DNA of 64,000 bases from Hyalangium minutum (GTDB taxonomy: Bacteria > Myxococcota > Myxococcia > Myxococcales > Myxococcaceae), in NCBI RefSeq assembly GCF_000737315.1, contig NZ_JMCB01000004.1, positions 1-64,000 on the forward strand. The letters are read 5' to 3'. Both the position numbers and the translations under genes were made by a program. Numbering within the stretch: position 1 is the first letter of the stretch; each line of letters starts with the position of its first letter. Shown in pieces: positions 1 to 40,741 of the stretch. The notes beneath the pieces were generated by a model, which made no database searches, had not been told where the DNA came from, and worked only from the letters and a program-made list of their open reading frames with translations.

Positions 1-4086
<4,086 letters not shown>

Positions 4087-4101: not shown

Positions 4102-7100
4102 GTGTCTGGGAATCAACCGACGAATCCTCCCTCGATGGCGCCGCTCGATCAGGCGCTGCTTGCGCTGAAGAAGGCGAACGCGAAGCTCTCCGCCGCCGAG
4201 CGCGAGAAGTCCGAGCCCATCGCCATCGTGGGCTTGTCCTGCCGCTTCCCCGGCGGCGCCAACGACCCGGAGTCCTTCTGGCGCCTGCTCGAGTCCGGCA
4301 CGGACGCCGTCCGCGAGATCCCGCCCGAGCGCTGGGAGCGCGATCCGGCCTTTCCCGAGCCCCTGGCCTCCTGGGCCGGGCTGCTCGACTCGGTGGACGG
4401 CTTCGACGCCCCGTTCTTCGGCATCTCCCCGCGCGAGGCCGCTCGCCTCGATCCGCAGCAGCGCCTGCTGATGGAGGTGAGCTGGGAGGCGATCGAGTCC
4501 GCCGGCTATGCCCCGTCCAGCCTCAGCGGCAGCCGCACGGGCGTGTACGTGGGGATCTGCTCGCTCGATTACCAGCGCCAGCTCCTGGGGAGAGACCCGT
4601 CGGAGGTGGACGCCTACGTCGTCACCGGGAACATGGTCAGCGTGGCGGCGGGCCGGCTCTCGTACGTGCTGGGCCTGCAGGGCCCGTGCATGTCCATCGA
4701 CACGGCCTGCTCGTCCTCGCTCGTCTCGGTCCATCTCGCGTGCCAGAGCCTGCGCGGACGCGAGAGCGATCTGGCGCTTGCGGGCGGCGTGAACCTCATC
4801 CTCTCTCCCGCGAGCATGTTCCTCCTGGGGCGCACCCAGGCCCTGGCGCCCGACGGACGCTGCAAGTCCTTCGATGCTCGCGCCAACGGCTACGCCCGTG
4901 GCGAGGGCTGCGGCATGCTCGTGCTCAAGCGGCTCTCGGATGCCGAGCGCGACGGAGATCCCATCTGGGCCGTCATCCGAGGCTCGGCGATCAACCAGGA
5001 TGGACGCTCCACGGGCCTCACGGCCCCCAACGTGCTCTCGCAGCAGGCGCTCCTGCGCAAGGCGTTGGAGAGCGCTCGCGTGAAGCCCGAGCAGATCGGC
5101 TACGTGGAGGCCCACGGCACGGGCACCTCGCTCGGAGATCCCATCGAGCTGGAGGCGCTCAAGTCGGTGCTGGGGACGCCCCGGGCGGATGGCTCGACGT
5201 GTGCCATTGGCTCAGTGAAGACCAACATCGGTCACCTCGAGGCCGCAGCGGGGGTCGCGGGTCTCATCAAGGTGGTGCTCGCCTTCCAGCACGAGGCCAT
5301 TCCGCGCCAACTGCACTTCCAGGCCCTCAACCCGCGCATCTCTCTCGAGGGAACGCCGTTCAAGATCGCCTCCTCGCCTCAGCCGTGGAAGGCGGGCGCC
5401 AACCCGCGCTTTGCGGGGGTGAGCTCGTTTGGCATGAGTGGCACCAACGCTCACGTTCTCCTGGAGGAGGCACCCCGGAACCCGGCGGCGCGGACGGTCT
5501 CCCCCATCGAGCGCAAGCACCACCTGCTGACGCTCTCGGCGATGTCCGACGGGGCGCTGCGCAGCCAGGCCACGCGGGTGGCGGAGCACCTGGCGGGCTC
5601 GCGCGGAGAGAACCTGGGCGACGTGTGCTTCACGTCCCATGCGGGACGGACCCACTTCGCCCAGCGCGCGGCCTTCGTGGCGGAGACGGTCGAAGAGCTG
5701 CGTGAGCAACTGCGGTCATGGGGCGCGGAGGGCGGAACCGGTGTCACCGGGAGCCTGCCCGCCGCTTCGCGCCGCCCGAAGGTGGCCTTCCTGTTCACAG
5801 GGCAGGGCTCACAGTACGCGGGCATGGGCCGGGGGTTGTATGAGACGGAGCCCGTCTTCCGGGAGGCGCTGGATCGCTGCGCGGCGCTGCTGAAGAAGGA
5901 GCTGCCGCATCCACTCCTGGACGTGATGTGGGGCACCCATACCGCAGAGCTGGATCAGACGCGGTACACCCAGCCCGCCCTCTTCGCGCTGGAGTACGCG
6001 CTCTGCGAGCTGTGGCGCTCCTGGGGCGTGGAGCCGGATGTCGTCATCGGCCACAGCGTGGGCGAGTACGCGGCGGCGTGCGCGGCGGGGGTGACGTCCC
6101 TGGAGGACGCCGCCCGATTGATCGCCGTACGGGCGCGGATGATGCAGGCGCTCGAGGCCGAAGGAGCGATGCTGGCCGTGCAGGCGGAGCCCGCGCTCGT
6201 GGAGCCGCTGCTGGCCCGCCTGGGCAGGGAGATCTCCATCGCGGCGATCAACGGGCCGCAGAGCCTGGTGCTGTCGGGGCGCCGTGCGCTGGTGGACGAG
6301 GCCGCGAAGGCGCTGGCCGCGGATGGCGTGAAGGTCAAACCGTTGAACGTCTCGCATGCGTTCCACTCGGACCTGATGGAGCCCATGTTGGATGCCTTCG
6401 AGCGCGAGGCCTCCCAGGTGAAGTTCCGCGCGCCGAGCCTGGCCTGGGTCACCAACCTGACGGGGGCCCGGGCGGAGGCGGACTTTGGCGGCGCCGCCTA
6501 TTGGCGCCGGCAGATCCGCGAGCCGGTGCGGTTCGTCGATTGCGTGCGCGCGGCCAGCGAGCAGGGCTGTGAGCTGTGGATCGAGATCGGGCCGAACCCG
6601 GTCCTGTTGGGCTCGGTCTCGGCCATCGCCAGTGAGGCCACCTCCATTCCCTCGCTGCGCAAGGGGCAGGAAGAGGGGCGGGTCCTCATGCAGGCCGTCG
6701 CGCAGCTCTACGCGCGAGGCGTGAAGCTCGACTGGCAGGCCTTCGACAAGCCCTTCGCCCGGCGCCGGGTCGTCCTGCCCACCTATCCCTTCGATCGCCA
6801 GCGGCACTGGATGCAGGCGGCCCCGTTGCCGTCCACAGCCGTTGCACGGCCCGCTTCCGCTCATCCCCTGCTGGGCGAGAGGCTCGTGCTGCCCGGGCGC
6901 GAGGTCCACTTCGCCCATCGGCTGAGCCCCGAGTCTCCGTCCTACCTCGGGGAACATCGCATCTTCGGGGAGGTGGTGGTCCCGGCCGCCTTCTACGTGT
7001 CCGCCTTCCTCGCCGCGGCCGAGCGCGCGAGTGGTGCGCGAGGGCTTGAGGACGTGGTGTTCGCACGTGCCCTCACCCTCGCGTCGGAGCAGCGGGTCGA

Positions 7101-10100
7101 CATCTCGGTGGCCCCGAGGGAAGGCGGCGGAGCCCGCATCGAGCTGGCCAGCGTGAGCGGCGATGAAGCCTCGCCGCAGTGGACATCGCATGCCTCCGCC
7201 GTGGCCTCCCTGGATCAGAAGGGGGTCGCGGCCGTGTCGGATGTGGACGGGCTGCGCACCCGGTGTGCCCAGGAGGCCGTGCCCTCCGAGGCCCTGGCCG
7301 GAGTGTGGGGCGCGTCCGGCGCTCATGAGCCCGCGAGCATGTCGCTCGGGCCGTCCTTCCGTTGGATCTCGGCGTTGTGGCGGGGGCCGTCCGAGGCCCT
7401 GGCTCGGCTGGAGCAGCCCGCGTCGCTGGCTGTGGATCCAGGAGTGCCTCCGACGCTGATCGACAGTTGCTTCCAGCTCATGGGGGCCTCGTTGAGCGGC
7501 GCGGATCTGGGGAACGCGTACATGCCGCTCAGCATCGAGCGTGTGCGAGTCCACGGGCCTGCCGACGGAGCGCTCTGGTGCCATGCCTCCACCCAGGTGA
7601 CGGCTGGGGGCGCGTTCGTTCGTGGCGATGTGCAGGTGCTCGATGCGTCGGGCCGGAAGGTGCTCGAGCTCAGCGGGGTCCGGCTGAAGAAGGTCGCGCG
7701 GGAGGAGCTGCTCCTGCTGAAGGAGACGTGGAACGAGTGGCTCTACGAGGTGAAGTGGCAGGCCCGTGAGCTTCCTCCCGCTTCGGGAGCGGATCTCTCG
7801 GCATCCGCGCCGTGGGTCTTCTGCCTGGACCGGCGTGGGCTCGGTGAGCGGCTCGCGGCCGAGGTGCAGCGGCGGGGTGGGCGTGCCGTGCGGCTCATCT
7901 CGGGCAATGCGTGGCGCCAAGTGGCTCCCGATATCTATGAAGTGAACCCGGGCAGCGCCGAGGAGATCCGGCAAGCGATCTCCCATGCGCTGGGTGAGGA
8001 GGCCTCCGTCGCGTATGTCGTCTCGCTGTTCGCGCTCGATGAGGGCGGGCCGGTCGAGGTGACGGCGCGCGCGCTGGCCACCACACAGGCGCTGTCGGGA
8101 GTGCGGTGGAAGCGGGCACCGCGCCTGTGGTGGCTCACGGAGGGTGCGCAAGCGGTCGGTGCCAGCAGCCATGCGGTGTCGATCTCCCAGGCGGGTCTCT
8201 GGGGGCTTGGCCGCAACGTCGCCGCGGAGCTGAACGAGCTCTGGGGTGGCGTGATCGATCTGGAGCCCACGAGCCGTCCCGAGCAGGTCCTGCGGGTGCT
8301 CGATCTGGTGGGCGGGGAGGAGGACCAGCTCGCGCTGCGCGGCGACGCCGTCCTGGCCCCGCGGATGGAGCGCTACCGGCAGGCCCGGGGCGCTCAGCGT
8401 GTCGCGATCAAGCCGGACGCGACCTATGTCATCAGCGGTGGCCTTGGAGGCATCGGCTGGCGCCTGGCGCGTGCGTGGATCCAGCAGGGGGCCCGTTCGC
8501 TCGTGCTGCTCGGTCGCTCGGCTCCGTCCGAGGCGGTGCGAGCGGAGCTGGCGAGCTACGAGCAGCGCGGCCTTCGCGTGCGTGCGGTCCAGGTGGACGT
8601 GTCTGACCGGGAGGCTCTGGCGCGCACCTGGAGCGAGCTCGAGGCCTCCATGCCCCCTGTCGCGGGCGTGGCGCATGCCGCGGGCGTGCTGAGCGACGCC
8701 GCGCTGGTGAAGCAATCCGAAGAGCACCTCCGAGCCACCTTCGCGCCCAAGGTCCTCGGAGCGCTGAACCTGCATGGACTGACGGCGGAGAGGAAGCTGG
8801 ACTTCTTCATCCTCTTCTCCTCGCTGGCATCGGTTGTCGGCTCTCCCGGCCAGGCCAACTATGCCGCCGCCAATGCGTGCCTGGACGCGCTCGCGCAGGA
8901 GCGCCGGAGGCTTGGACTCCCGGCGTTGAGTATCGGCTGGGGCCCGTGGGGAGAGGTGGGCATGGCAGTCTCCCATCAGCGCTCCCTCTCCGTGCGAGGC
9001 ATCACTCCGCTTCCGCCCGAGGCGGCGCTGGAGGCGCTCGGCGCTTGTCTCCAGGAGGAGCGCGCGCGGCTGGTCATCGCCGCCGTGAACTGGACGACCT
9101 TGAGTGCCCTCCTGCCCGTCAAAGGGCGCTCGCTGCTCGCTGCCTGGGCCCCGAAGGAGCGTCCCGCGTCCACCGAGCCCGCGGGACAGTTCGTGCAGAA
9201 GCTCTTGGCTGCGCCTGCCCGGCAGCGCCGGGACCTGCTCCAGACGTTCCTCACGACAGAGGTGCGCCGGGTGCTGGGACTCGCGAAGGGCACTCGCATC
9301 GATCCGGGCCAGAGCTTCTTCGACATGGGGTTCGACTCGCTGATGGCGGTCGAACTGCGCACCGCGCTCCAGCAGGCGCTGGGGAAGAGTCTCCCCGCCT
9401 CGCTCGCGTTCGAGCACCCGAACCTCGAGGCCCTCACGACCGCCTTGCTTGCGGATCTGGGGCCAGGTCCGGAGGCAGAAGCCCCGGCGGCCACTTCCGC
9501 CGAGCCCGTGCAGCCAGCCCCTCAGACTCCCGAGGTGCGCACGGATGACGATGCGATCCAGGCAGTCCTCGCGGGCAGGCTGCCAGCCGCTGCACTGCCG
9601 CCCGTGAGGCTGGCCTCTCTCGCCACGCAGGTGCGCGCTTCCCGGCGCGAGCTGCCACTGCTTGCCGCGGAGCCCATTGCCATCGTCGGCATGGGGTGCC
9701 GCTTCCCTGGCGGGGCTCGCAACCCTGAGCAGTTCTGGCGCCTGCTGCGTGACGGCATCGAGGGAATCCAGGAGGTCCCCGCCGAGCGCTGGGACAAGGA
9801 GGCCTGGTACGACCCTGATCCCGAGGCGCCCGGGAAGATGCGGACCCGCCGAGGCGGCTTCCTGGATGGGGCGGCGGAGTTCGACGCGGGCTTCTTCGGC
9901 ATCTCGCCACGTGAGGCGAAGTGCATGGACCCGCAGCACCGGCTCCTGCTGGAGGTCGCCTGGGAGTCCCTGGAGGACGCTGGCCAGCCGCCCGCGCGCT
10001 TCACGGGCAGCAAGACGGGCGTCTTCATGGGCTTCCTCAACAACGACTACCTCGGCGCGGGAGACATGGCCGAGCTGGAGGGCCACTTCGCCACGGGTAA

Positions 10101-13100
10101 CGGCTTCAGCAACGCCGTCGGGCGCCTCTCGTACGTGCTCGGTCTCCACGGCCCGTCGGTGGCGCTGGATACGGCGTGCTCCTCCTCGCTCGTGGCCATC
10201 CACCTGGCCAGCCAGAGCCTGCGCCAGCGCGAGTGCGACATGGCGCTCGCGGGCGGCGTCAACCTCATCCTCGCTCCGGGCCTCTCGGTGATGATGTCGA
10301 AGCTTGGCGCGCTGGCTCCGGATGGAAAGTGTAAGACGTTCGATGCGTCGGCGGACGGGTACGTGCGCGGTGATGGCTGCGGCGTGCTCGTGCTCAAGCG
10401 GCTGTCGGACGCGCTACGGGATCGGGATCGCGTCGTCGCCGTCGTGCGCGGCTCCGCGGTGAACCACGGTGGCCGGGGAGGTGGCTTCAGCCAGCCGAAC
10501 GTGCATGCCCAGCAGATGCTGCTCCGCGAGGCACTGGCGACGAGCCAGACTCTGCCTTCCCAGGTGAGCTACCTCGAAGCGCACGGCACCGGAACGCCGC
10601 TGGGCGACCCGATCGAGGTGCGCGCGGCGACCGCGGTGCTCTCCGCCGGGCGCACGGCCGAGGCGCCGCTGATGATCGGCTCGGTGAAGACGAACCTGGG
10701 CCACCTGGAGGCGGCTGCGGGTGTGGCGGGAGTGATCAAGGTGGCCCTGGCGCTCCAGCACCAGGAGATCCCTCCTCATCTGAACTTCAAGTCTCTCAGC
10801 CCGCACATCAACCTGGACGCCATTCCTGCGAAGATCCCCACCACGCTCCTCCCCTGGCAGCCCCTGCAGGGCCGGCGGATCGCGGGGGTCAGCGCGTTCG
10901 GTCTGGCAGGCACCAACGCGCATGTCATCCTGGAAGAGGCGCCGGGCCCGGCGGAGCTGGGAATCGAGGAGCCGGCCAAGGCTCCAGAGGGAGCGCGAGA
11001 GGAGTTGCTCGTTCTGTCGGCGCGCTCCGAGCCCGCCCTGGCGGCGTTCGTGACGGCCTATGCGGAGCATCTGCGCGCCTCGGACCTACCGCTGAAGGAC
11101 GTGGCGGGAATGGCCGCCACCCGCCGTGCCCATCATGAGCACCGGCTCGCGGTGATGGGCGGTACCAAGGCGGAGGTGCTGGAGGCCTTGGAGTCCTTCC
11201 GCCAGAGAGGCAGTCACCCGAGCGCCATTGCCGGAGCGAGCGAAGGAGGATCGCGCCCGCGAACCGTCTTCGTGTTCCCGGGACAGGGCTCGCAGTGGCT
11301 GGGCATGGGGCGAGAGCTGCTCGCTCGCGAGCCTGACTTCCGCCGGGTGCTGGAGCAGTGCGACGAGGCCATGCGGCCGCACACGGACTGGCGGCTGCTC
11401 GAGGCGTTCCAGGCCGCCGAGGCGCCCCAGCGCATCGACATGGTGCAGCCGATGCTGTTCGCCATGTCGGTGGGGCTGGGCGCGCTGTGGCGCGCGTGGG
11501 GCATCGAGCCGGACGCGGTGGTGGGGCACAGCATGGGCGAGGTGGCTGCGGCGTGTGTGGCCGGAGCGCTGAGCCTGGAGGATGCGGCACGCATCATCTG
11601 CCTCCGGAGCCGGCTGATGCGCGAGGTCTCTGGGCGTGGGGCGATGGCGATGGTGGAGCTGGGCGCTCGCGAGCTGCGCGAGTGGCTGGAGCCCTTCGGC
11701 GGAGCCCTGTCTCTGGCGGTCTGCAACAGCCCCCGCTCGTCCGTGGTGGCAGGGGACTCGCAGGCCCTGGAGTCGCTGCTCGCGAAGCTGGAGGCCGCGA
11801 AGATCTTCTGCCGGCGCGTGAAGGTGGACGTGGCCTCTCACAGCGCGCAAGTGGACCCTCTCCGAGAGCCGCTGCTGCGCGCGCTGGAAGGGATCCAGCC
11901 GCGCGCGGGGACAGTGCCTCTCTGGTCCACGGTGACGGGCCAGGTAGTGGAGGGCTCGGAGCTGGTGCCCGAGTACTGGGTGCGAAACCTGCGCGAGCCT
12001 GTCCAGTTCGCTCAAGTCATCCAGGCCCTCGTGGAGGCGGAGCACTCGCTGTTCCTCGAGCTCAGCCCTCACCCCATCCTGGTGCCGTCCATTGAGCAGA
12101 CCGTGGAGCACGTGGGGGAGGGCCGGGCCTGGGCTGTCGGGAGCCTGCAGCGAGAGAAGCCCGAGCGTATGGCGATGCTGCGTGGTCTGGGGGCCCTGTA
12201 CACCCGCGGGTATCCGGTGGACTTCCGCTCATTGTACCCCGACAGCCGGTGCGTGCCGCTGCCGACCTACCCGTTCCAGCGGCAGCGCTACTGGCTGGAG
12301 CTGGCTCCTGGACCCGAGCGCCGAGGCGCCGCAGCCTCTGCGGCGGCAGGGCGTCCGCGGGAGAAAGAGCCGCTCGCGAACATCCTCTATGAAGTGGCAT
12401 GGCCGGAAGTCGCGGCCTCCAAGCCCCAGCGTGAGGCGGGCCATGACCGATTCCTCATCCTTGCGGATCAGGCAGGGTTCGGGCAGCGGTTGTCTCGGGA
12501 ACTCGAGTCGCGTGGCCACTCCTGCGTCGTGGTGCCTGCCAACGGCGCCAACATGGAGCAGGGAATGCTGGCCGTGTTCCAGGGCGGAGCGATGTTCCGC
12601 GCGTGCATTCACCTGGGGAGCCTCGACTTCGCTCCAGGTAGCAGTGGGGAAGCACCGCCCTCCGGAGCGGCTGTCCTGATGGACTCCATCCTGCGCTCCC
12701 TCGCCGTGCTCGTGCGCCGGGGCTCGACGCCGCTTTGGCTCGTGACCCGGGGTGCCCAGCGCCTGGGGACCGCTGGGATCTCACTGGCGCAGTCACCCGT
12801 CTGGGGCCTGGGCCGGACGATCGCGGTCGAGCACGCGGCGCTGTGGGGCGGCCTGGTGGACCTGGATCCCTCCGAGCCAGTGGGAGATGTGGCGCTGCTG
12901 GCGGACGCGCTGACCCAGCAGGACGGCGAGAGGCAGATCGCGTTCCGGCATTCGACCCGCCGGGTGGCACGCGTCACGGCTTCTCCCGTAGGGGAGGACA
13001 CGCTGCTGCCCAGCATCCAGGGAGATCGCACTTATTGGATCACCGGGGGGCTGGCGGGACTGGGAGGCGAAGCCGCGGCCTGGCTCGTCGAGCAAGGCGC

Positions 13101-14148
13101 TCGGCATCTGCTCGTGAGCGGGGCTCCAGACGCGGAGAGCGCTGAGCGCCTCCGGGAGTTGGGGGCCAAGGGGGCATCGATCTCCTTTGATGCGACCTCC
13201 CTGCATGACGGGAGCGCCTGGGCGCGCATCCTCGATGGACTCCGGGTGCCGCTCGCGGGTGTGCTGCACCTCCTGCCTCCCGGAGGGGCCCCGACACCCC
13301 TGGGGCAGCCAGGCTCCGAGGCGCTCGTAGCACCGTTCCGCGCGGCGGCCCTGAGTGCCTGGGGCGTGCACGAGGCGACGCGGGGCAGGAGCCTCGACTT
13401 CCTGCTGCTCTGCTCGCCTGCGATCTCGCTCTTGGGAGGGGTGGGCCAGGGCCCCACGGCGGCTGCCAGCCAGTTCCTCGAAGGGCTCGCGGCACTCAGG
13501 CGCGACGAGGCCCTGCCCACCACCAGCATCCTCGTGGCCGCGTGGCCGGGAGAGGAGGTAGGGCCGCTGAAGGCACTCGGGATCACCCCGCTCACCGCGG
13601 GACAGCTCCTCGCGTCCTCCAGCCGGGCTCTGTCCGCGGGCTTCACCAGCCGCATGGCCGCGTCGATCGACTGGTCCTCCTTCCGTCCCGTCTACGAGGC
13701 GCGCGGGGATCGCCAGCTCCTGGAGCGTGTGGGAGTGGATGACACGCAAGCCAGCGCTGGCGCGGCGGAGTGGCGCAAGCAACTCGCGGCACTGCCGCCC
13801 GAAGCCGCGCGCAAGCGGGTGACCGAGACCGTGGTGGCCTACGTCACCGAGGCGCTCGGGCTCCCCGCGGATCAGCCCTTGGGGCTCACGCGTCGCTTCG
13901 CAGATCTGGGAATGGACTCGGTGATGGCGGTGCGGCTGATGACGAAGCTCGGGAAGACCCTGGGCGAACGGTTACCCACGGTGCTCGCCTTCGAGCACCC
14001 GACGGCGGCGGCGCTGGCGAATCACCTCTCCGAGAACGTGCTCCACATCCGGGAGGAGGAGCGCGTGGTGCAGGCCGGGGACGATGATGACGCATCCGAA
14101 GACGAGCTGGCCGAGCTCCTGGCGGCGAAGCTGCAGAAGCTGGGATGA
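4102..14148 (+). CDS. Bimodular type I PKS: KS-AT(malonyl)-DH-KR-ACP / KS-AT(methylmalonyl-type)-KR0-ACP
   Basis: GTG start after AAGGAG. Both KS have DTACSSS, HGTGT and [10 protein letters not shown]1 GHSVG/HAFH; [12 protein letters not shown]; KR1 [19 protein letters not shown]; ACP GFDSLM. AT2 RIDMVQP/GHSMG/VASH; KR2 lacks the catalytic Tyr (GQGPTAAAS); ACP GMDSVM. Confidence 0.95.
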
Positions 14149-14166
14149 GGAAGGGAGCGACGAGCC

Positions 14167-17100
14167 ATGAGTGAGGCAAACGCGGCGGAGGCGCGCAAGG
14201 CGCTGCTCCGGCAGGCACTCTCCAAGATCGATGAGCTTCAGACGAAGCTCACGCAGGCGGAGCAGTTCCGTGATGCGCCTATCGCGGTGGTGGGCATCGG
14301 CTGCCGGTTCCCCGGCGCGAACGAGCCGGAGCGCTACTGGCGCAACCTGGCGGAGGGCTTGGACCTGGTCACCGAGGTCCCACCCGACCGCTGGGACAAC
14401 GAGCAGTGGTTCGATCCGGATCCGGACGCACCCGGCAAGACGTACTCGCGCCACGGGGGCTTCCTGGGGAAGGTGGATGGCTTCGACGCGGCCTTCTTCG
14501 GCATCGCGCCGCGCGACGCCGTGCACATGGATCCTCAGCATCGGCTCCTGCTCGAGTGCGCGTGGGAGGCGCTGGAGCGTGCGGGGCTGCCCGCGGATCG
14601 CCTGAGCGGGACGAAGACAGGCGTCTTCGTGGGTATCTCCAGCAGCGACTACGGCATGCTCATCCATGAGCGGGAGCCCATGGAGTCGCTGGACGCGTAC
14701 TTCCTCACGGGCCTCGCTCCGAACTTCGCCGCGGGCCGCACCTCTTATGTGCTGGGACTGCAGGGGCCGGCGATGGCGGTGGACACGGCGTGCTCCTCGT
14801 CGCTGGTCGCGGTGCACCTGGCCTGCCAGAGCCTGCGGGCGGGGGGCTCGGATCTGGCGCTGGCGGCGGGCACCAACCTGATGCTGATGCCCCTCTCGCA
14901 CATCGTGATGTCCAAGGTGCGGGTGCTCTCGGGCACCGGGCGCTGCCGGACGTTCGACACTGCGGCGGACGGGCTCGTGCGCGGCGAGGCCGTGGCGGTC
15001 GTGGTCCTCAAGCGGCTGTCGGATGCGCTGGCTGCGGGCGACAACGTGCTGGCGGTCATTCGGGGCACGGCGGTGAACCAGGACGGGCCCAGCAGCGGAC
15101 TGACTGTGCCCAACAAGCACGCGCAGGAGCGCGTCATCCGCGACGCGCTCGAGAACGCCAAGGTCCAGCCCCACGAGGTGAGCTACGTGGAGGCGCACGG
15201 CACCGGCACCCCGCTGGGGGACCCGATCGAGCTGCGCGCGTTGAGCGCGGTGTACGGGAAGGATCGGCCTGCGGACAGCCCGCTGTACGTCGGCTCGGTG
15301 AAGACGAACATCGGGCACACGGAGCCGTCGGCGGGCATCGCGGGCCTGATCAAGGTCATCCTCTCCTTGCAGAACCGCACGCTTCCGCCGCATCTGCACT
15401 TGCATCAGCGCACGCCTCAGGTGGACTGGAGCGGGCTGGGGATCGATGTGCCGACGCGGCTGACCCCCTGGTCTCGCCCGAAGCTCATCGCGGGAGTGAG
15501 CGCGTTTGGCGCCAGCGGGACGAACGCGCACATCGTGGTGGAAGAAGCGCCGCCCGTGGAGCACGGGTCTCCCAAGCCGGTTCGGCCTGAGCTGCTGGTG
15601 CTCTCGGCACGCGGCGAGCCTGCACTGCGAGCGCTCGCCACCGAGTACATCTCGCACCTCCAGGGAGGCAAAGCGGCCTCGATGGCGGAGCTGGCAGCGG
15701 CGGCGAGCGTGCGCCGCATGCACCACGAGCACCGGCTGGCGGTGGTGGGAGAGACGCACGAGGAGCTGGTGGCGGCGCTCGAGCCGCTGTCTCGCGGAGC
15801 GCCGCATCCGTTCGGGGCCTCGGGCCAGAGCGACAAGGAGACGCGACGCAAGGTGGTCTTCGTCTTCCCCGGGCAGGGCTCGCAGTGGGCGGCCATGGGC
15901 CGGGATCTGCTCGAGCAGGAGCCGGTCTTCCTGCGCGCGGTGGAGCGATGCGCCGAGGCGTTTGCCCCCCACGTGGACTGGTCTCTGCTGGATGAGCTGC
16001 GTTCCGAGCAGCCTTCAGAGCGGATGGATGTCATCCAGCCGGCGCTGTTCGCCATGGAGGTTGGGCTGGCGGCGCTCTGGCGCTCATGGGGCCTGGAGCC
16101 GGACGCGGTGATCGGGCACAGCATGGGAGAGGTGGCAGCCGCGCATGTGGCTGGAGCGCTCAGTCTGGAAGATGCGGCGCGGGTCATCTGCCGCCGCAGC
16201 AAGCTGCTGCGAGAGGTGAGCGGGCAGGGGGCCATGGCGGTGGTCGAGCTGGGGATGAAGGAGGCGCAGGAGCGTCTGCGCGGCCTCGAGGATCGATTGG
16301 CTGTGGCGGTGAGCAATGGCCCACGCTCCACGGTGCTATCCGGGAACGCGGACGCGCTCGAGACGTTGCTGGGGCAGTTGGAGCGGGAGGGGATCTTCTG
16401 CCGCCGTGTGAAGGTGACGGTGGCCTCGCATAGCCCTCAGATGGATCCGCTCCGAGGCCCTCTGCTGGCGGCCCTGGCCGAGCTCAAGCCGCGACAGGGC
16501 GCGGTCCCGCTCTACTCCACGGTGACGGGGGAGGTGAGCCCCGGCACGAGCCTCGACCCCGCGTACTGGGTGAACAACCTGCGTGAGCCCGTGCGCTTCT
16601 GGCACACCATCGAGAAGTTGATGGCAGACGGCCACACGCTGTTCGTGGAGATCAGCCCCCACCCCATCCTGCTCCCCGCGATAGAGCAGATCTTCGCGGA
16701 GCGTGCCACCGCCGCCTACGCCTTTGGCAGCCTCCGGCGAGAGCAGCCCGCCCGCCGCACGTTGCTGAAGTCCCTGGGGGACTTGTACGTGCGAGGTGCG
16801 CCGATCGACTGGACGAAGCTCTACCCGAATGCCCGCGTCGTCCCGCTGCCGACCTATCCGTTCCAGCGGGAGCGCTACTGGGTGGATCCGCCGGCTGCGG
16901 ACGCGCGGCGGGCCCGAGGGGCCTCCATGGGAGGCGCGCTGCTCGGAGAGAGATTCGAGTCAGCGGGGGACAGTCGGCTGCACTCCTGGCGGAGATGGTT
17001 GAGCCTGGGCGATGCCGGCTTCCTGGCGGAGCATCTCGTCCAGGGGCTGCCGATGGTCCCCGCGACGATCTATCCGCTCCTGGTCCTGGAGGCTGCGCGG

Positions 17101-20100
17101 CGGGCGCTCGGTCCAGGGCAGTACGCCGTGGAGGAGCTCTTGTTCGGAGGCCCGCTGGCGCTCGAGGCAGCTCCTCAGGGTGAGCGCGAGCTGCAGATCT
17201 CCCTCGTCGAAGAAGGAGCAGGGCGCACGAGCTTCCGCGCCGCGAGCCGCCGCGAGGGCGAGCCTTGGGCGGTCCACGTGTCGGGGAGGATCGGCTCGGG
17301 CGCGAACATGGGCGAGGTGTTCGGGCAGGAGGCTCTTGAGGCCGTGCGCGCACGGTGCTCGATGCCAGCGCCTGCCGACGGGTTCTACGGAGAGCTGGAG
17401 CAGCGGGGAATCGCGAACGGCCCACGGCTGAGATCGATCCAGGAGATCTGGCTCGGTCAGGGCGAGGCGCTCACGCGGCTCTCCGTTCCGGCTGGGAGCG
17501 CCCGCGCGTCCGAAGGGCTGCCCTTGCACCCGGTGCTGCTCGACGGCGCGTTCCAGAGTATCGGCGCCGCCCTGGCAACGCTGGAGAACGAGGAGCCCGG
17601 GGTGCCACTCCCGACGAGGATCCAGGCGTTGACCGTGGGGACCTCCTCGGTGACGCAGGCCTGGAGCCATGTGCGCGTGCGCTCCATCGATGCGCGGACG
17701 CTCGAGGCGGATCTGCGCATTCTCGATGAAGCGGGGGCGCTGATCGCGGAGGCGCGCGGTCTGCGGCTCGAGCTGAGAGATGCAGGGGGCCAGCGCCCGG
17801 AGGCGAAGCTGTTCGCCAACGAGTGGCAAGCCACGGAGGCACTGCCCGCGCCGACCAGCCCGGAGCCCGGCACCTGGCTCGTCGTCACGCATGAGCTCGC
17901 CAGGGGCCGGCTCCTCGGCCAGAGGCTGGAGGCGCATGGCCAGAAGGTGCTCTACGCGGAGCCGGGGGCGCTCCGGGTGACCGATCGGGCCCGTGTGCTC
18001 TTGAGCGAGGCGCTCGCCGGGCCGTGCCGAGGCGTCCTGTACCTGGCGTCGAGTGTGCCGACTCCAGGAGCGGAGGACGTGGCGGAGAGCTGCTCGGCGC
18101 TGGGGCGCGACTCCATGGATCTGCTGGCGATTGCCCAGGCCCTCCAAGGGTCTGGGGTGAATCCTCTGCCGCGTCTGTGGCTCATCACCCAGGGGGCGCA
18201 GAGCGTCGCGGGCGAGCCGGTGTCTCTCGCCCAGTCAGGCGTCTGGGGGCTGAGCCGGAGCCTGTTCAAGGTGAAGTCCGCGCGACTCGACGTGGGATCG
18301 GAGGACACGCTGGAGTCCGCCTCCCGGGAGCTGCTCACCGGTTCGGCCGAGGATGAGATCGTACTTCGCCCCAATGCCCGGTACGTCGCGCGACTGCGTC
18401 AGCCGGGCGCGGGCTTGGCCTTTCAGCAGGTGCCCGCGCACGAGCAGCCGTTCCGCCTGGAGGTGGAGAAGCCCGGCGAGCTCGACAGCCTCTCCCTGCG
18501 CGTGAGCGAGCGCCGCGCCCCAGGACGGGGCGAGGTGGAATTCCGCGTGCATGCGGCGGGGCTCAACTTCAGTGACGCCATGAAGGCCCTGGGGATGTAC
18601 CCCGCCGAAGAGGGCGAGAAGTCTGTGCTGGGCCTGGAGTGTGCGGGGCAGGTCATCGCGGTGGGCGAGGGCGTCGAGGGCCTTGAGGTGGGGCAAGAGG
18701 TCTTCGGGCTCGCTGCGGGGAGCCTCGGGGCGTACGTCACCGTGCCGGCCGCGCAGGTGGTGGCCCGCCCGCGAGGGCTCACGGTCGAGCAGGCCGCCTC
18801 CTCCGGAATGGCCTTCACGGCGGCCTGGCACGCACTGCACGAGGTCGCCCGGCTCCAGAAGGGAGAGCGGATCCTGATCCACTGTGCCGCCAGCGGCGTG
18901 GGGCTCGCGGCGGTGCGGATCGCCCGGCAGGTGGGGGCGGAGGTCTTCGCGACCACCAGCTCGCCGGAGAAGCGGGACTTCCTGCGCGAGCAGGGCGTGG
19001 CGCGGGTGATGGACTCGCGCTCGCTGCGCTTCGCCGAGGAGGTCCTCGCGGCCACTCAGGGCGAGGGCGTGGATGTCGTCCTCAACTCGTTGGCGGGCGA
19101 GGCGATCGAAAAGGGGCTCTCGGTCCTGGCGTCGGATGGCCGCTTCGTGGACCTGGGCAAGCGGGACCTGAATGCGGCGCATCGGACGCTGAGCCTGGGC
19201 CTGCTGCGCAAGCGAATCTCGTACCACGTCGTGGATCTGCTGGGGCTCGCGCGCGAGCGCCCGGGACGGATCCGCTCGCTGCTGGGACAGGTCTCGCAGG
19301 CGCTCGATCAGGGCACGCTGGCTCCGCTGCCGGTGCACGTCTGGCCGCTGGCCAAGGCGAATGAGGCGATCCGCGCGCTGGCGATGGCGAAGCATGTCGG
19401 CAAGCTCGTCGTCTCGATCCAGCAGGATGAGGGAGCGCTCGTCTCGGTTCCGGCGCGTCCATGGGCTGGCCTCTCCAAGGAGGCGGCGTACCTCCTCGTC
19501 ACCGATGCACCCACGATGGGTGCCTGGCTCCTCCGGTGGATGGTGGAGGAGGGGGCCCGGCACGTCGTGCTCGCCACACCTCGGGAGGGGACTTTCGAAG
19601 CGTTGGCCGCTGGGGCACGGGAAGCCGAGGTGGCGGGGGCGGATGTGGAGTGGGCGCGGGTGGAGCTGACGGATGCGAGCCAACTGGCGCACCTGCTCGA
19701 GGAGGGAGAGCGACGCGGGCGCCGGTGGAAGGGGTTCTTCCACGCCCCTGCCGCCGAGCCTCGCGAGGCGCTGGAGTCCGCACTGGGCCCGAGCGTGACC
19801 CCGGCGATGACGCTGGAGACCCTGACGCGTGGGAGGGCACTCGACACCTTTGTGCTGCTCTCGTCGGGAGGCGCGTCGCTCGGACGCTCCAGCCCGCCAA
19901 CGGTCTCCGCCATGACGGCCGTGCTCGACGCACTGGCGCAGCGCCGGCGCCTCGCGGGTCTTCCTGGGCTCAGCCTGGATTTGGGACCCGTGGCAACCGA
20001 GGAGGCCCAGAAGGGCGCGGCAGCGAACCTCTCGGCGCGCCAGGCACGAGCGCTCTTGTCGGAGGCGCTCGGCAGCGGACTGACGCAAGTTGGAGCCCTG

Positions 20101-20502
20101 CCCGCGTCTCCGCCCGAGGCGGGATGGATGTCCCGGGTGAGCCCGCTGCCGCGCTTCTCGGAGGTGGTGGCCGCCTTGGGGAGCACGGGGGGGGCGAGCG
20201 CCGGAGCGGGCACGCTGTTGAGCGGAGTTGCACCCGAAGAGCGCAAGGCGCGCCTGCTGGACTTCGTACACGAGCAGGTGAGCCTCGTCCTCCGGATGGA
20301 TCGTGAGAAGATCAGCGTGGAGGCGCCGCTGCGAGGCTTCGGGATTGATTCCCTCATGGGGCTCGAGCTGCGCAACCGGCTGGAGAAGGCGTTGGGCTTC
20401 CGTCTCCCCGCCACGGTGATGTGGAGCAGCCCGACGATCGCCGCCCTCGTCGAGAAGCTCCTCGAGGTCGCGGAGTCCCAACTCGTGCAGCAGACGAACT
20501 GA
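14167..20502 (+). CDS. Terminal PKS module KS-AT(methylmalonyl-type)-DH-ER-KR0-ACP, no fused thioesterase
   Basis: KS DTACSSS/HGTGT/GHTEPSAG; AT RMDVIQP/GHSMG/VASH; DH HLVQGLPMVP and LDGAFQ; ER LNFSDAMKALGMYP and IHCAASGVG; KR Rossmann motif is TDAPTMG and Tyr is replaced by Val; ACP GIDSLM followed by a short tail. Confidence 0.93.
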   Translation: MSEANAAEARKALLRQALSKIDELQTKLTQAEQFRDAPIAVVGIGCRFPGANEPERYWRNLAEGLDLVTEVPPDRWDNEQWFDPDPDAPGKTYSRHGGFLGKVDGFDAAFFGIAPRDAVHMDPQHRLLLECAWEALERAGLPADRLSGTKTGVFVGISSSDYGMLIHEREPMESLDAYFLTGLAPNFAAGRTSYVLGLQGPAMAVDTACSSSLVAVHLACQSLRAGGSDLALAAGTNLMLMPLSHIVMSKVRVLSGTGRCRTFDTAADGLVRGEAVAVVVLKRLSDALAAGDNVLAVIRGTAVNQDGPSSGLTVPNKHAQERVIRDALENAKVQPHEVSYVEAHGTGTPLGDPIELRALSAVYGKDRPADSPLYVGSVKTNIGHTEPSAGIAGLIKVILSLQNRTLPPHLHLHQRTPQVDWSGLGIDVPTRLTPWSRPKLIAGVSAFGASGTNAHIVVEEAPPVEHGSPKPVRPELLVLSARGEPALRALATEYISHLQGGKAASMAELAAAASVRRMHHEHRLAVVGETHEELVAALEPLSRGAPHPFGASGQSDKETRRKVVFVFPGQGSQWAAMGRDLLEQEPVFLRAVERCAEAFAPHVDWSLLDELRSEQPSERMDVIQPALFAMEVGLAALWRSWGLEPDAVIGHSMGEVAAAHVAGALSLEDAARVICRRSKLLREVSGQGAMAVVELGMKEAQERLRGLEDRLAVAVSNGPRSTVLSGNADALETLLGQLEREGIFCRRVKVTVASHSPQMDPLRGPLLAALAELKPRQGAVPLYSTVTGEVSPGTSLDPAYWVNNLREPVRFWHTIEKLMADGHTLFVEISPHPILLPAIEQIFAERATAAYAFGSLRREQPARRTLLKSLGDLYVRGAPIDWTKLYPNARVVPLPTYPFQRERYWVDPPAADARRARGASMGGALLGERFESAGDSRLHSWRRWLSLGDAGFLAEHLVQGLPMVPATIYPLLVLEAARRALGPGQYAVEELLFGGPLALEAAPQGERELQISLVEEGAGRTSFRAASRREGEPWAVHVSGRIGSGANMGEVFGQEALEAVRARCSMPAPADGFYGELEQRGIANGPRLRSIQEIWLGQGEALTRLSVPAGSARASEGLPLHPVLLDGAFQSIGAALATLENEEPGVPLPTRIQALTVGTSSVTQAWSHVRVRSIDARTLEADLRILDEAGALIAEARGLRLELRDAGGQRPEAKLFANEWQATEALPAPTSPEPGTWLVVTHELARGRLLGQRLEAHGQKVLYAEPGALRVTDRARVLLSEALAGPCRGVLYLASSVPTPGAEDVAESCSALGRDSMDLLAIAQALQGSGVNPLPRLWLITQGAQSVAGEPVSLAQSGVWGLSRSLFKVKSARLDVGSEDTLESASRELLTGSAEDEIVLRPNARYVARLRQPGAGLAFQQVPAHEQPFRLEVEKPGELDSLSLRVSERRAPGRGEVEFRVHAAGLNFSDAMKALGMYPAEEGEKSVLGLECAGQVIAVGEGVEGLEVGQEVFGLAAGSLGAYVTVPAAQVVARPRGLTVEQAASSGMAFTAAWHALHEVARLQKGERILIHCAASGVGLAAVRIARQVGAEVFATTSSPEKRDFLREQGVARVMDSRSLRFAEEVLAATQGEGVDVVLNSLAGEAIEKGLSVLASDGRFVDLGKRDLNAAHRTLSLGLLRKRISYHVVDLLGLARERPGRIRSLLGQVSQALDQGTLAPLPVHVWPLAKANEAIRALAMAKHVGKLVVSIQQDEGALVSVPARPWAGLSKEAAYLLVTDAPTMGAWLLRWMVEEGARHVVLATPREGTFEALAAGAREAEVAGADVEWARVELTDASQLAHLLEEGERRGRRWKGFFHAPAAEPREALESALGPSVTPAMTLETLTRGRALDTFVLLSSGGASLGRSSPPTVSAMTAVLDALAQRRRLAGLPGLSLDLGPVATEEAQKGAAANLSARQARALLSEALGSGLTQVGALPASPPEAGWMSRVSPLPRFSEVVAALGSTGGASAGAGTLLSGVAPEERKARLLDFVHEQVSLVLRMDREKISVEAPLRGFGIDSLMGLELRNRLEKALGFRLPATVMWSSPTIAALVEKLLEVAESQLVQQTN

Positions 20503-20521
20503 GCCGCGGACAGCGGCGCGA

Positions 20522-21289
20522 ATGAGAGTGATGGAAAACGATACGGCACAGTGGTTGATGTTTGGAGGAACCCGGAAAGCCGCGAGGGCGCGGATCTTCT
20601 GCTTCCATCACGCGGGAGGAGGCGCGTCGATGTACCGGAAGTGGGTGGAGGATCTCCCACCTGAGCTCGATCTCTATGCGGTCCAGCTTCCGGGGCGAGA
20701 GTTCCGCATTCGCGAGGCCTCCTTCACGCAACTGGAGCCGCTCGTCCAGGAGCTGGCCCGGGTGCTGGGGCCTCTGCTGGAGCAGCCGTTCGCCCTCTTC
20801 GGTCACAGCATGGGCGCCACCGTGGCATTCGAGCTGGCCCGCGAGCTGCGTCGGCGCGGGGCGAGGCAGCCTCTCATGTTGGGCGCCTCCGGGCGCATCG
20901 CCCCCCACTGCCGCTCGCGCTTCACGCCGGTGCAGGAGCTCACGGAGGCGCAGCTCGTCGAGAAGCTCAAGAGGGGAGGCGGTCTGCCCGATTACGTCCT
21001 CAACGAGCCGGAGCTGATGGCGATGGTCCTCCCGCTGGTCCGCTCCGACTACAAGATTGTCGACGGCTACCGGCTCACTCCCGAGCCACCGCTGACCTTT
21101 CCCATTGCGGCCTTCTACGGGCTCGACGACGTGCTCACGACACCGGAGGAGATCACGGGGTGGCAGCAGCACACCACCGGTGCTTTCTCGGTGCAGGCGC
21201 TCCCGGGCGACCATTTCTTCTTGGCCAACGCCCGGCGAGAGATCTTGTGGACCCTGAGCCGGGGCATCCTGCAGGCGCTGGACAGGTGA
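20522..21289 (+). CDS. Stand-alone type II thioesterase
   Basis: FCFHHAGGGAS, QLPGRE, GHSMG nucleophile motif and GDHFF His; 19 bp downstream of the last PKS gene. Confidence 0.92.
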   Translation: MRVMENDTAQWLMFGGTRKAARARIFCFHHAGGGASMYRKWVEDLPPELDLYAVQLPGREFRIREASFTQLEPLVQELARVLGPLLEQPFALFGHSMGATVAFELARELRRRGARQPLMLGASGRIAPHCRSRFTPVQELTEAQLVEKLKRGGGLPDYVLNEPELMAMVLPLVRSDYKIVDGYRLTPEPPLTFPIAAFYGLDDVLTTPEEITGWQQHTTGAFSVQALPGDHFFLANARREILWTLSRGILQALDR

Positions 21290-21331: not shown

Positions 21332-22654
21332 TCAGGAGAGGAGCTTCTGGGCCAGCCGCACGCGCACACCGTTCTTGGGCCCCACACCCACTCCCTGGCG
21401 CACCGGCACCTCCGCTGGATCGGCCAGCTCCAGATCGAAGTTCCGCACGATCGTCGCGAGTACGACCTTCAGCTGCTGCTCCGCGAACGCGGCCCCAAGG
21501 CAGCGCCGCACCCCCGCCCCGAAGGGGATGAACTCGTAGGGGGTGAACTTGCGCTCGAGGAAGCGCTCCGGGCGGAACGTGTCCGGCTCCGGGTACAGAT
21601 CCTCGCGAGAGTGGATCATCCGGCTGAACACCGCGACACCGGCGCCCGCAGGCAGGGTATAGCCGCGGACCTGGATGGGCGCCCGCAGCTTGCGGAACAT
21701 GTCCGGCACGGGCGGGTAGATGCGCAGCGTCTCGTTGCAGACGGCTCCCAGGTAGGGGAGCGAGGCGTACGCCTCGGGGCCTGCGTCGGCGGGCAGGCCC
21801 GCCAGCTCCTCGCGGAGCTTGCGCAGGATCTCGGGGGACCGGTAGGTCCAGTAAACGCCCCAGGCGATCGCAGTGGCGGTGGCGGCGTAGCCCGCCACGA
21901 GCAGTCCCACCAGCTCTTTGCTCACCTGCTCGTTGGTCATCCCCGTGCCGTCGTCGTACTTCGACGTCATCATGAGGTTGAGCATGTCATCCGGCGCGGC
22001 CTCGAGATTGGCGCGGCGGGCCGTGAGCTGCTCGGCGATCAGCGCGTCCAGGCGTGCGTTGGCGCGCAGGTACCTCGCGTAGGGGCCAACTCCGCCGAAC
22101 TCATGACGCAGCCAACTGAAGAAGAGCAGGGCGGGCGTCGTCGCCTTCTGGAGCTCGACGAAGGCCTCCTCGAAGCGCGCGACCAGGGAGTCATCGGCCA
22201 GGCCAAAGACGTTGCGGAGGATCACCTCGCGCGTGATGCCGCGGGACACCTCGTGCATGGGGATCGTCTCACCGGGGCGCACCGCGCCCATCCGCTTGAG
22301 CGCTACCTGCTGCATCGTGCCAGCGTAGGCCCGCATGCGAGCGCCCAGGAACGGCGGCATCAGCAGCTTGCGCTGGCGCCGGTGCGGCTCGCCAACGATC
22401 AGGGGGACGGAGCCATCGCGGAAGACCATCCGCAGGTTTTCGGGCGCGAAGATCTCGTAGCTCGTGGGGTCCGCCGTGAGGACCTCGCGTGCCCCCTCGG
22501 GCTCGCCGGTGATGATCAGCGGCCCTTCCAGAGTCTTGACGGTCAGGGTGTCGCCGTAGTTCTTCCGGAACCAGGCGTAGGCCCCGACGGGATCGGTCAT
22601 GTAGCGGAACGTCTCGACGAGGGCGATGGAGGGGCCAGGGGGAAGGGGAGCCAT
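21332..22654 (-). CDS. Cytochrome P450 with an atypical I-helix
   Basis: Heme motif FGAGVRRCLG, ExxR (ETLR), PERF; I-helix AGYAAT. Start moved to ATG 22654 (MAPLPPGPS), which has an AGGA RBS; the ORF-track start at 22801 overlaps the upstream gene. Confidence 0.93.
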   Translation of the reverse strand: MAPLPPGPSIALVETFRYMTDPVGAYAWFRKNYGDTLTVKTLEGPLIITGEPEGAREVLTADPTSYEIFAPENLRMVFRDGSVPLIVGEPHRRQRKLLMPPFLGARMRAYAGTMQQVALKRMGAVRPGETIPMHEVSRGITREVILRNVFGLADDSLVARFEEAFVELQKATTPALLFFSWLRHEFGGVGPYARYLRANARLDALIAEQLTARRANLEAAPDDMLNLMMTSKYDDGTGMTNEQVSKELVGLLVAGYAATATAIAWGVYWTYRSPEILRKLREELAGLPADAGPEAYASLPYLGAVCNETLRIYPPVPDMFRKLRAPIQVRGYTLPAGAGVAVFSRMIHSREDLYPEPDTFRPERFLERKFTPYEFIPFGAGVRRCLGAAFAEQQLKVVLATIVRNFDLELADPAEVPVRQGVGVGPKNGVRVRLAQKLLS

Positions 22655-27497: not shown

Positions 27498-27594
27498 GAA
27501 GGACTCCCTTGGGTGCTGGAGCCCGCTCCGGCTCGCGAATGCCGATGACGGGGCCCAGGTGAACTATAAGTGGAATGAAGTACAGGAGAGAAAC

Positions 27595-28548
27595 GTGACG
27601 ATCGCGATCTTGGGTGCAGCGGGGGCCGTTGGAAAGGCGGTGGCTGCGGCACTTCGGCAGCGCAACATTCCCTTTCGTGCCGTGGGCCGCAACAAGGCCC
27701 GGCTGGAGGCAGCCTTCAAGGACTACCCTGGCGCCGAGCTCGTGGAGGCGGATCTCATGACGGTGGAGGGAGCGCGCAAGGCCTCCCGGGGCATGAGCAC
27801 GCTCATCCATACCGCGGGGGTGACCTACACCGAGTTCGAGCGGCTGCCGCCGATGATGCGCGCGTCCATCGACGGTGCGGTGGCCGAGGGCGTGAAGCGG
27901 ATCGTCCTGGCCACCAACGTCTATCCCTACGGCCGGCCCCGCACCTCGCCCGTGAAGGAAGATCACCCGCGCGAGCCGCACACGAAGAAGGGCCAACTGC
28001 GCAAGCAGCAGGAGGATCTGCTGCTGGAGGCACATGCCCAGGGCAAGCTGCAGGGACTGGTGGTGCGCTTCCCGGACTTCTACGGGGCGGACGCGGAGTA
28101 CAGCTTTGCCATCGGCATGGCTCAGGCGGCGGTGGCCGGCAAGGCGGCGAACCTGGTGGGCAACATCGATCTGCCCCACGAGTTCATCTACATCCCGGAC
28201 GCGGGACCGGTGCTGGTGGACCTGGCCCTTCGCGATGACGTCTGGGGCGAGGTCTGGCACTGCGGTGGGGCGAGCACCATCACTCAGCGTCAGTTCGTCA
28301 CCCAGCTCTTCGAGGCGGCGGGCCGCAAGCCGAAGTTCCGGGCGGCGGGCTCGGGGCTGGTGCGCATGATTGGCCTCTTCGATCCCTTCATGCGCGAGCT
28401 GTTTGAGATGATGTACCAGTGGCAGGAGACCCCCCTGGTGCTGGACGACTCCAAGCTGCGCGTGAAGCTCGGGAACGTGAAGAAGACGTCCTACGAGGAC
28501 GGCATCCGCCAGACCATTGGGGAGCTCAAAGCTCGGACGGCGAAGTAG
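27595..28548 (+). CDS. NAD-dependent epimerase/dehydratase (atypical SDR) family protein
   Basis: GTG start after AGGAGAG; ILGAAGAVG Rossmann motif; TNVYPYG, HTKKG, VRFPDFYG. Confidence 0.85.
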   Translation: MTIAILGAAGAVGKAVAAALRQRNIPFRAVGRNKARLEAAFKDYPGAELVEADLMTVEGARKASRGMSTLIHTAGVTYTEFERLPPMMRASIDGAVAEGVKRIVLATNVYPYGRPRTSPVKEDHPREPHTKKGQLRKQQEDLLLEAHAQGKLQGLVVRFPDFYGADAEYSFAIGMAQAAVAGKAANLVGNIDLPHEFIYIPDAGPVLVDLALRDDVWGEVWHCGGASTITQRQFVTQLFEAAGRKPKFRAAGSGLVRMIGLFDPFMRELFEMMYQWQETPLVLDDSKLRVKLGNVKKTSYEDGIRQTIGELKARTAK

Positions 28549-38634: not shown

Positions 38635-38677
38635 CGGCCCCGGTGTCCTCGAGAGAGGCCCGGGGCCGTTGCTTTTT
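38635..38677 (+). terminator. Terminator after groEL
   Basis: CGGCCCCGG...CCGGGGCCG stem followed by TTGCTTTTT. Confidence 0.6.
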
Positions 38678-40188: not shown

Positions 40189-40320
40189 TCACCCCCGAGC
40201 ATGGCGGACCCTGTGTCCATGCGCAACGCAACACACGCGGAATCCGTTGACCGGAGGCCGAAGCCTGCGGATGCTGCCACCCCCGCCCGGGTCGCCCCGG
40301 CCGGGGCCCTGGAGGCTGAC

Positions 40321-40716: not shown

Positions 40717-40741
40717 GCTTCCGGGCGGCGAACGGGAGCGC

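Follow-up and report, generated by a model that had tools for sequence, protein, structure and literature searches.

The first 64 kb of contig JMCB01000004.1 from Hyalangium minutum DSM 14724 (assembly GCA_000737315.1; JMCB00000000 is the genome of H. minutum DSM 14724T, PMC5441343), referred to here as the window, begin with three polyketide synthase (PKS) genes, ORF1 to ORF3, which are followed by a type II thioesterase (TEII) gene and a block of tailoring and envelope genes extending to ~32.3 kb. Together these genes probably form the 3' part of a modular type I PKS cluster of the aurafuron type, whose product would most likely be released as a pyrone and tailored afterwards. Domain order was taken from Pfam, while the calls of activity and substrate specificity were made by reading motifs; since the E-values of the domain matches range from 1e-28 to 1e-187, chance similarity is not a concern. 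The PKS and thioesterase genes are separated by 15-19 nt, an operon-like spacing.

Module A of ORF2, composed of ketosynthase (KS), acyltransferase (AT), dehydratase (DH), ketoreductase (KR), and acyl carrier protein (ACP) domains, has a malonyl-type AT1 (motifs GHSVG and HAFH) and an active KR1. This KR possesses the GGxGxxG fold motif, the catalytic K, S, Y, and N residues, and an LSD (LxD) motif without the Trp, and is therefore of the B type. DH1 of the same module contains HPLL, HxxxGxxxxP, and DxxxQ, with LGP in place of YGP, so that dehydration is likely but not certain. Module B of ORF2 (KS-AT-KR-ACP) and the single module of ORF3, which includes both a DH and an enoylreductase (ER), have ATs of the methylmalonyl type (AT2 and AT3; GHSMG, VASH, and an RxDVxQP-type motif) and dead KRs: the catalytic K, S, Y, and N are all gone from KR2, and KR3 has lost its NADPH motif in addition to K, Y, and N. 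The DH of ORF3 is vestigial (without HPLL and without YGP) and the ER looks intact; because KR3 is dead, both domains are idle, with no substrate to act upon. The Cys-His-His residues are intact in all three KSs, as is the DS(L/V) serine in all ACPs. No TE domain (PF00975) was matched by Pfam in ORF3, which stops ~15 residues past its ACP. An initial annotation of this DNA had described an E-alkene module followed by two successive VASH modules with KRs lacking catalytic residues, and no fused TE. The consecutive VASH modules and the missing TE are fully borne out by the motifs, as are the malonyl-type AT and the active B-type KR of the alkene module, for which only the dehydration step has to be softened to likely. 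The DH and ER of the last module were absent from that account.

The ER domains of ORF1 (1856-2656) and ORF3 (18449-19249) share ~48 near-identical residues (LRFAEEVLAATQGEGVD.VLNSLAGEAIEK...), whereas the two ER regions as a whole have only ~70% DNA identity. The near-identical stretch suggests gene conversion within the cluster. Such conversion may account for the intact look of the idle ER of ORF3, in contrast to the decayed ER of AufG, the counterpart of ORF3 in the aurafuron synthase (see below).

The relationship to a characterized cluster is apparent from the cytochrome P450 encoded on the opposite strand after the TEII gene (P450-A). Its close orthologues are found only in metagenomes, and the next matches are ~50% identical, the best from a named organism being ADO72992.1 of Stigmatella aurantiaca DW4/3-1 (51%), which is AufH. 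The S. aurantiaca locus encodes, in order, PKSs of 3367 and 2136 aa, the P450, a third PKS (2708 aa) starting with ACP-KS-AT-AT, and a FAD monooxygenase. Since the UniRef names at this locus are AufG, AufH, AufI, and AufJ (A8YP95-A8YP98), it is the aurafuron (auf) cluster, and the 3367-aa PKS is AufF. The best match of AufH in the window is P450-A. ORF3 aligns with AufG end to end (2103/2111 aa) at 49% identity, and residues 2197-3344 of ORF2 align with the C-terminal 1190 aa of AufF at 50% identity. At the domain level, KS3 and the AufG KS are 69.9% identical (other KS pairs, 52-58%), AT3 and the AufG AT 67.9%, and AT2 and the second AT of AufF 64.6% (other KS/AT pairs, 52-60%). The motif states agree as well: AufF module 2 and AufG have VASH and GHSMG ATs, their KRs are without K, S, Y, and N, and the AufG DH likewise lacks HPLL and YGP. 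AufF, AufG, and AufH are the positional counterparts of ORF2, ORF3, and P450-A, respectively.

In both H. minutum and S. aurantiaca DW4/3-1, a bimodular PKS ending in KS-AT(VASH)-KR(dead)-ACP is followed by KS-AT(VASH)-DH-ER-KR(dead)-ACP without a TE and by a P450 gene close downstream, the proteins being 49-51% identical. VASH ATs, dead KRs, and the lack of a TE are the hallmark of the aurafuron synthase terminus. Because the 2,4-dimethyl-furanone ring of the aurafurons needs exactly two propionate units, this terminus provides an empirical calibration, namely that such ATs load methylmalonate and that such KRs are idle. The statement in the initial annotation that no named cluster could be matched is thus superseded by the auf cluster, with its counterparts in AufF, AufG, and AufH. 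As H. minutum is already known to produce furanones and pyrones, an aurafuron-like line in this species would hardly surprise a specialist. The two clusters differ in their accessory genes, as the auf cluster has no thioesterase gene and continues from AufH to AufI (the loading PKS) and AufJ (the FAD monooxygenase), whereas the H. minutum locus has the TEII, a second P450, a CrtI paralogue, a reductase, a condensation-family protein resembling the dehydratase AzeD, and three envelope proteins. The H. minutum system belongs to a characterized family, as a variant with a different set of tailoring genes.

That modules of this type have a degenerate KR and DH, and in AufG a degenerate ER as well, could also be taken as plain decay, in which case the last module would be skipped or the locus silent, and no dimethyl-pyrone would be formed. 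The 2007 aurafuron abstract by Frank is said to name redundant modules and domains, a description that would suit this view, and reportedly also calls the PKS genes of the actinomycete furanone pathways highly divergent. Decay is nevertheless very improbable as an explanation, since the catalytic residues of KS3, AT3, and ACP3 are all kept, the module is conserved at 81% identity in a metagenomic relative (L006) and at 49% in AufG (KS identity 70-90%), and the aurafuron ring requires both propionate units.

With a functional terminus as the preferred reading, chain extension can be outlined as follows. The last module of ORF1 would hand over a saturated unit, to which module A of ORF2 would add malonate, with reduction of the keto group by the B-type KR and dehydration by the DH to an E-enoyl unit. 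Module B would then add methylmalonate and keep the keto group, its KR being dead, and ORF3 would do the same with a further methylmalonate, its DH and ER being presumed idle relics. In the resulting ACP-bound 2,4-dimethyl-3,5-dioxo-6-enoyl thioester, attack of the C5 enol on the thioester is the most likely route of release, and would yield a 6-alkenyl-4-hydroxy-3,5-dimethyl-2-pyrone. ORF3 having no TE domain, the chain is expected to lactonize and so release itself, like that of the aurafuron line, which is TE-less too. The discrete TEII, which starts 19 nt after ORF3 and has the triad residues Ser (GHSMG), Asp (YGLDD), and His (GDHFF), is RifR-like (2e-47), so that its most likely role is editing; it would mainly clear stalled ACPs and may assist release. 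The pyrone would then probably be oxidized or otherwise modified by the two P450s, the CrtI-like flavoenzyme, the reductase, and the AzeD-like dehydratase. Both the pyrone release and these accessory roles are what we infer from domain content, motif states, and gene order.

Comparison with other pathways supports a pyrone at the point of release. The initial annotation had referred to aureothin-type lines, and the likeness stands as far as the mechanism is concerned, since two consecutive unreduced extensions in those termini also give a triketide that cyclizes to a pyrone. It does not extend to the genes: aureothin synthesis involves a fused TE and an O-methyltransferase that fixes the gamma-pyrone, whereas ORF3 has no fused TE, and profile searches revealed no methyltransferase among the genes at 20.5-32.3 kb. 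The actinomycete 5-alkenyl-3(2H)-furanone pathways (e.g., linfuranone with LfnO1; actinofuranone/E-837, MIBiG BGC0000050) share the two-propionate terminus and an alpha-pyrone precursor. According to PMC13514767, which cites a 2025 study, alpha-pyrones are the substrates that the FAD monooxygenase LfnO1 turns into furanones (linfuranone and related compounds) through Baeyer-Villiger oxidation, decarboxylation, dehydrogenation, and cyclization. Furanones have further been described as co-occurring with alpha-pyrones or possibly deriving from them (PMC12843350). It is therefore reasonable to regard the pyrone as the released product, but the final product may differ, as the pyrone is often an intermediate in the furanone family. 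Of the dimethyl-pyrone put forward in the initial annotation, the release step is consistent with the AufF/AufG-like terminus, the pyrone substrates of LfnO1, and the isolation of hyapyrone B, a 2-pyrone, from H. minutum; its role as end product is less secure, since it may be an intermediate or a shunt product.

Unlike the H. minutum window, the actinomycete furanone clusters contain an AufJ-family flavin monooxygenase. AufJ (a PF01494 FAD monooxygenase) had no tblastn match in the 64-kb window, and no homologue was present in the retrieved parts of four related metagenomic loci (L002, L003, L004, and L006). Among the best 120 AufJ homologues listed (down to 46% identity), no protein is from H. 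minutum, the upstream half of the cluster lying outside the window; the database searched does list other proteins under the name of H. minutum. The 120 homologues include enzymes from Streptomyces aculeolatus and MAR4 that are 48-49% identical to AufJ. Two homologues considered as possible H. minutum genes (P0275 and P0250) were rejected, as they belong to other auf-type clusters from a Sequence Read Archive (SRA) run and a metagenome, and a genome scan with AufJ as the query returned only auf-type loci of Archangium and Cystobacter. In either search, the best 120 matches included no further H. minutum protein resembling AufH or AufJ, which suggests, at the level of protein similarity, that the locus in the window is the sole auf-like locus in the genome.

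Without an AufJ-type ring contraction, the pathway might stop at 2-pyrones of the hyapyrone type, so that the alpha-pyrone would be the true end product and furanones would arise only by non-enzymatic oxidation in air while the strain is cultured or the extract worked up. The lack of an AufJ match in the window, among the best 120 homologues, and in the four related loci fits this idea, as does the report that acetal-furanones can be artefacts of alpha-pyrones (PMC12843350), along with the isolation of hyapyrone B as a 2-pyrone. Such an outcome is possible but falls well short of probable, given that the upstream half of the cluster could encode a monooxygenase, that the two P450s and the flavoenzyme kept in the block are likely to oxidize something, and that hyafurones are the main compounds reported from the species.

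A further clue to events after release is the stand-alone condensation-family (C-family) protein encoded in the accessory block. This protein was first labelled a PapA5-like acyltransferase that might off-load the chain; comparison with PDB structures makes an AzeD-like role at least as likely, as the match to AzeD (8S6L) scores 137 bits (1e-38; residues 3-428, ~35% identity) and that to PapA5 (1q9j) is remote (21 bits, 2e-3). By these PDB comparison scores, which are not a phylogeny, the protein is nearer to AzeD than to PapA5 or to the C domains of nonribosomal peptide synthetases (NRPSs). Its motif HHSAGDG is intact, is invariant in the window protein and three orthologues, and differs from the PHxxxDG variant of AzeD. 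A genome-collection scan with an alignment of this protein gave no confirmed locus, the source genome included, perhaps since the stretch in the window is masked there. AzeD, the founding member of the C_standalone clade, is a stand-alone C-family dehydratase whose step follows that of the short-chain reductase AzeE and precedes that of a P450. About one third of the clade varies at the first His of the motif, and whether other members are dehydratases is unknown according to the authors (bioRxiv 10.64898/2026.07.17.738954). As in the azetidomonamide pathway of Pseudomonas aeruginosa, to which AzeD and AzeE belong, the H. minutum protein is encoded near a short-chain reductase and a P450, but its motif is HHxxxDG rather than PHxxxDG, and its substrate would be a polyketide rather than an NRPS bicyclocarbamate. 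The reductase gene adjoins the C-family gene in L002, while the gene for a 141-aa membrane protein lies between the two in the window, L003, and L004. These similarities make it a live possibility that the reductase and the AzeD-like protein, as a dehydratase, work as a pair on the heterocycle after its release. As the pair is conserved, reduction may take place after release, an outcome that the initial annotation had listed as counting against its proposal.

If the reductase and the C-family protein instead acted as a trans ketoreductase-dehydratase in the manner of AzeE and AzeD, or if a PapA5-like reaction off-loaded the chain as an ester or amide, the ring would be remodelled or would never have been a 4-hydroxy-2-pyrone, and the terminus would not be a pyrone. 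The intact HHxxxDG motif, the full-length homology to AzeD, the position of AzeD between reductase and P450, and the recurrence of the reductase gene beside or near the C-family gene in the window and in L002, L003, and L004 all point in this direction. The proposal is nonetheless unlikely in view of the low identity to AzeD, the altered first residue of the motif, and the reservation of the AzeD preprint authors about the rest of the clade. In addition, a 3,5-diketo thioester lactonizes readily, and the retrieved parts of the auf-type loci encode neither enzyme, yet the aurafuron chain is released.

The extent of the accessory block was defined by comparison with relatives, all of which are metagenomic contigs retrieved in part. 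L002, L003, and L004 are the three closest matches in the search with the CrtI-like protein, the remaining matches being mostly housekeeping CrtI. All genes from the TEII to the CrtI paralogue are kept in these three loci, except for the small membrane protein in L002, and the CrtI gene is always at the outer edge of the block. The outer flanks are common to L003 and L004 and differ in L002, which places the downstream edge of the cluster at ~32.3 kb. L006 (JGI 3300078389 Ga0620843_0000362) is a rearranged relative in which part of the block was retrieved. Between its TE and propeller genes lie two P450-A-type copies, together with genes for a TetR regulator and an alcohol dehydrogenase and a fragment of an ISL3 transposase. 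The penultimate module of L006 has ~250 extra residues without a Pfam match, and an apparent extra DH in this module was discarded because Pfam gave no confirmation. The TEII gene directly follows the last PKS gene in L002, L003, L004, and L006 and was not seen in the auf-type loci. Apart from the AufH-like P450, no gene of the block was found in the retrieved parts of five auf-type loci.

Table 1. Features of the PKS terminus and accessory block in the H. minutum window
Feature	Coordinates	Strand	Basis
ORF1, 3' part of PKS gene: (AT tail)-DH-ER-KR-ACP, fully reducing module	1..4086	+	Pfam
ORF2, bimodular PKS, 3348 aa: KS-AT-DH-KR-ACP-KS-AT-KR-ACP; AufF counterpart	4102..14148	+	Pfam, motifs, alignment
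ORF3, last module, 2111 aa: KS-AT-DH-ER-KR-ACP; AufG counterpart	14167..20502	+	Pfam, motifs, alignment
Type II thioesterase, RifR-like, discrete, 255 aa	20522..21289	+	PF00975 6e-52; RifR 3fla 2e-47
Cytochrome P450-A, AufH counterpart	21335..22654	-	PF00067; heme loop FGAGVRRCLG
Secreted beta-propeller protein, 943 aa, two CxxCH haem-c sites	22689..25517	-	Pfam and NCBIfam
Stand-alone condensation-family (C-family) protein	25751..27049	+	Pfam PapA_C and Condensation
Predicted membrane protein, 141 aa	27075..27497	-	Hydrophobic segments
NAD(P)-binding reductase, extended SDR / NmrA type	27592..28548	+	PF13460, PF01370, PF05368; PDB matches to SDRs and epimerases
Cysteine-rich putative lipoprotein, 205 aa	28644..29261	+	Weak match to Cys-rich N-terminal part of VDE profile
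Cytochrome P450-B	29291..30676	-	PF00067 2e-101; AGHETT, FGGGMRMCIG
CrtI-family flavoenzyme, second phytoene-desaturase paralogue	30732..32279	-	TIGR02734 412 bits; PDB 4dgk 5e-70

Conservation varies among the products of the block. P450-B is 82% identical to its counterparts in L003 and L004 and 47% identical to that in L002, and the CrtI paralogue is 64% identical to the other CrtI of H. minutum. It would be unusual for a polyene polyketide to be the substrate of a carotenoid-type desaturase or isomerase. The propeller protein, an envelope redox protein, has a signal peptide and haem-binding sites at C527xxCH and C692xxCH, and it matches propeller and hydrazine-synthase families (the latter weakly, to hydrazine synthase subunits); its gene is syntenic with the PKS end in all four relatives. 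The 141-aa membrane protein had no family match in profile searches and has a 79% identical orthologue in L003 and L004. The gene for the putative lipoprotein, present in the window, L002, L003, and L004, lies between the propeller and P450-A genes in the relatives and has moved in the window. Its product was at one stage considered a lipocalin, an assignment dropped because the match covers no more of the VDE profile than its Cys-rich N-terminal part.

H. minutum is reported to produce 3-furanones (the hyafurones), hyapyrrolines, a 3-pyrone (hyapyrone A), and a 2-pyrone (hyapyrone B), the last with the formula C33H44O4, a terminal phenyl group, and a triene. Hyafurones are the main compounds described and are reported with stereocentres at C-7 and C-9. 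No published gene cluster for the hyapyrones, hyafurones, or hyapyrrolines was found in the searchable literature. These three series are the most likely products of the locus, with the assignment itself evenly poised. In its favor are the identity of the species and the apparent uniqueness of this auf-like locus in two protein searches. The oxygen count of hyapyrone B equals exactly that of the pyrone plus one hydroxyl. The formula of hyapyrone B was also tried as a test of the hyafurone link and set aside, since all it determines is how many unsaturations there are, which does not tell the possibilities apart.

Several observations weigh against the proposed structure and its place in the furanone family. 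The C6=C7 alkene is likely rather than certain, as DH1 has LGP for YGP. By a polyketide parity argument, the stereocentres at C-7 and C-9 of the hyafurones are expected to be oxygen-bearing carbons, and oxygenation at these positions conflicts with the predicted C6=C7 alkene and C9 methylene unless oxidation occurs later; a weakened DH1 together with oxidation by a P450 could reconcile the two. No monooxygenase of the AufJ/LfnO1 type was found in the window or, going by the best 120 AufJ homologues, in H. minutum, leaving the furanone step that defines the family unaccounted for. Finally, the loading module and the number of modules belong to the upstream half of the cluster, beyond the end of the contig.

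The locus is a candidate for the origin of the hyapyrone, hyafurone, and hyapyrroline metabolites of H. minutum. At least two different sets of tailoring genes accompany the aurafuron-type terminus, one of them without the flavin monooxygenase thought to make the furanone, and a testable question is whether the conversion of pyrone to furanone in H. minutum is enzymatic by another route or chemical. In addition, an AzeD-like stand-alone C-domain protein is now placed in a polyketide pathway. This protein and the apparent absence of the ring-contracting monooxygenase are the points worth following. A more far-reaching and rather doubtful idea is that the locus represents a distinct branch of the aurafuron family, without AufJ or LfnO1, which diversifies the pyrone or triketide by a conserved toolkit of its own (AufH-like P450, P450-B, CrtI flavoenzyme, reductase, and AzeD-like protein). 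The three envelope proteins, including the secreted di-haem propeller protein, may be part of the toolkit of such a branch. If this were true, the toolkit would explain, by undescribed enzymology, why the heterocycles of H. minutum (2-pyrone, 3-pyranone, furanone, and pyrrolinone) are so unusually varied.

The upstream limit of the sequence lies within ORF1. Because the window starts at base 1 of the contig, ORF1 is cut at its 5' side by an assembly break, which does not reflect biology; the contig most likely broke inside ORF1 at repeated PKS sequence, and the 5' half of the cluster sits on another contig. By motif reading, the remaining ORF1 module has a DH with HxxxGxxxxP, YGP, and DxxxQ, an ER with LIHSAASGVG, and an active KR. 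A metagenome scan with the DH region of ORF1 as the query gave no match.

The G+C content is ~69% across the whole window, and beyond ~36 kb Pfam identifies housekeeping and signalling genes typical for a myxobacterium. Just outside the conserved block, the product of a gene at 32912-35188 (+) combines an N-terminal CBM56 carbohydrate-binding module with a di-haem oxidoreductase (DHOR) domain. At 40054-40716 (+), the gene for an EncFtn-like protein (encapsulated ferritin) shares the region 38677-42968 with those for a CheW-domain protein, a response-regulator diguanylate cyclase, and a hybrid histidine kinase. The valyl-tRNA synthetase at 44375-47863 (+) has a C-terminal tail of ~100 residues with matches to low-complexity profiles of the histone H1-like and extensin-like kinds.

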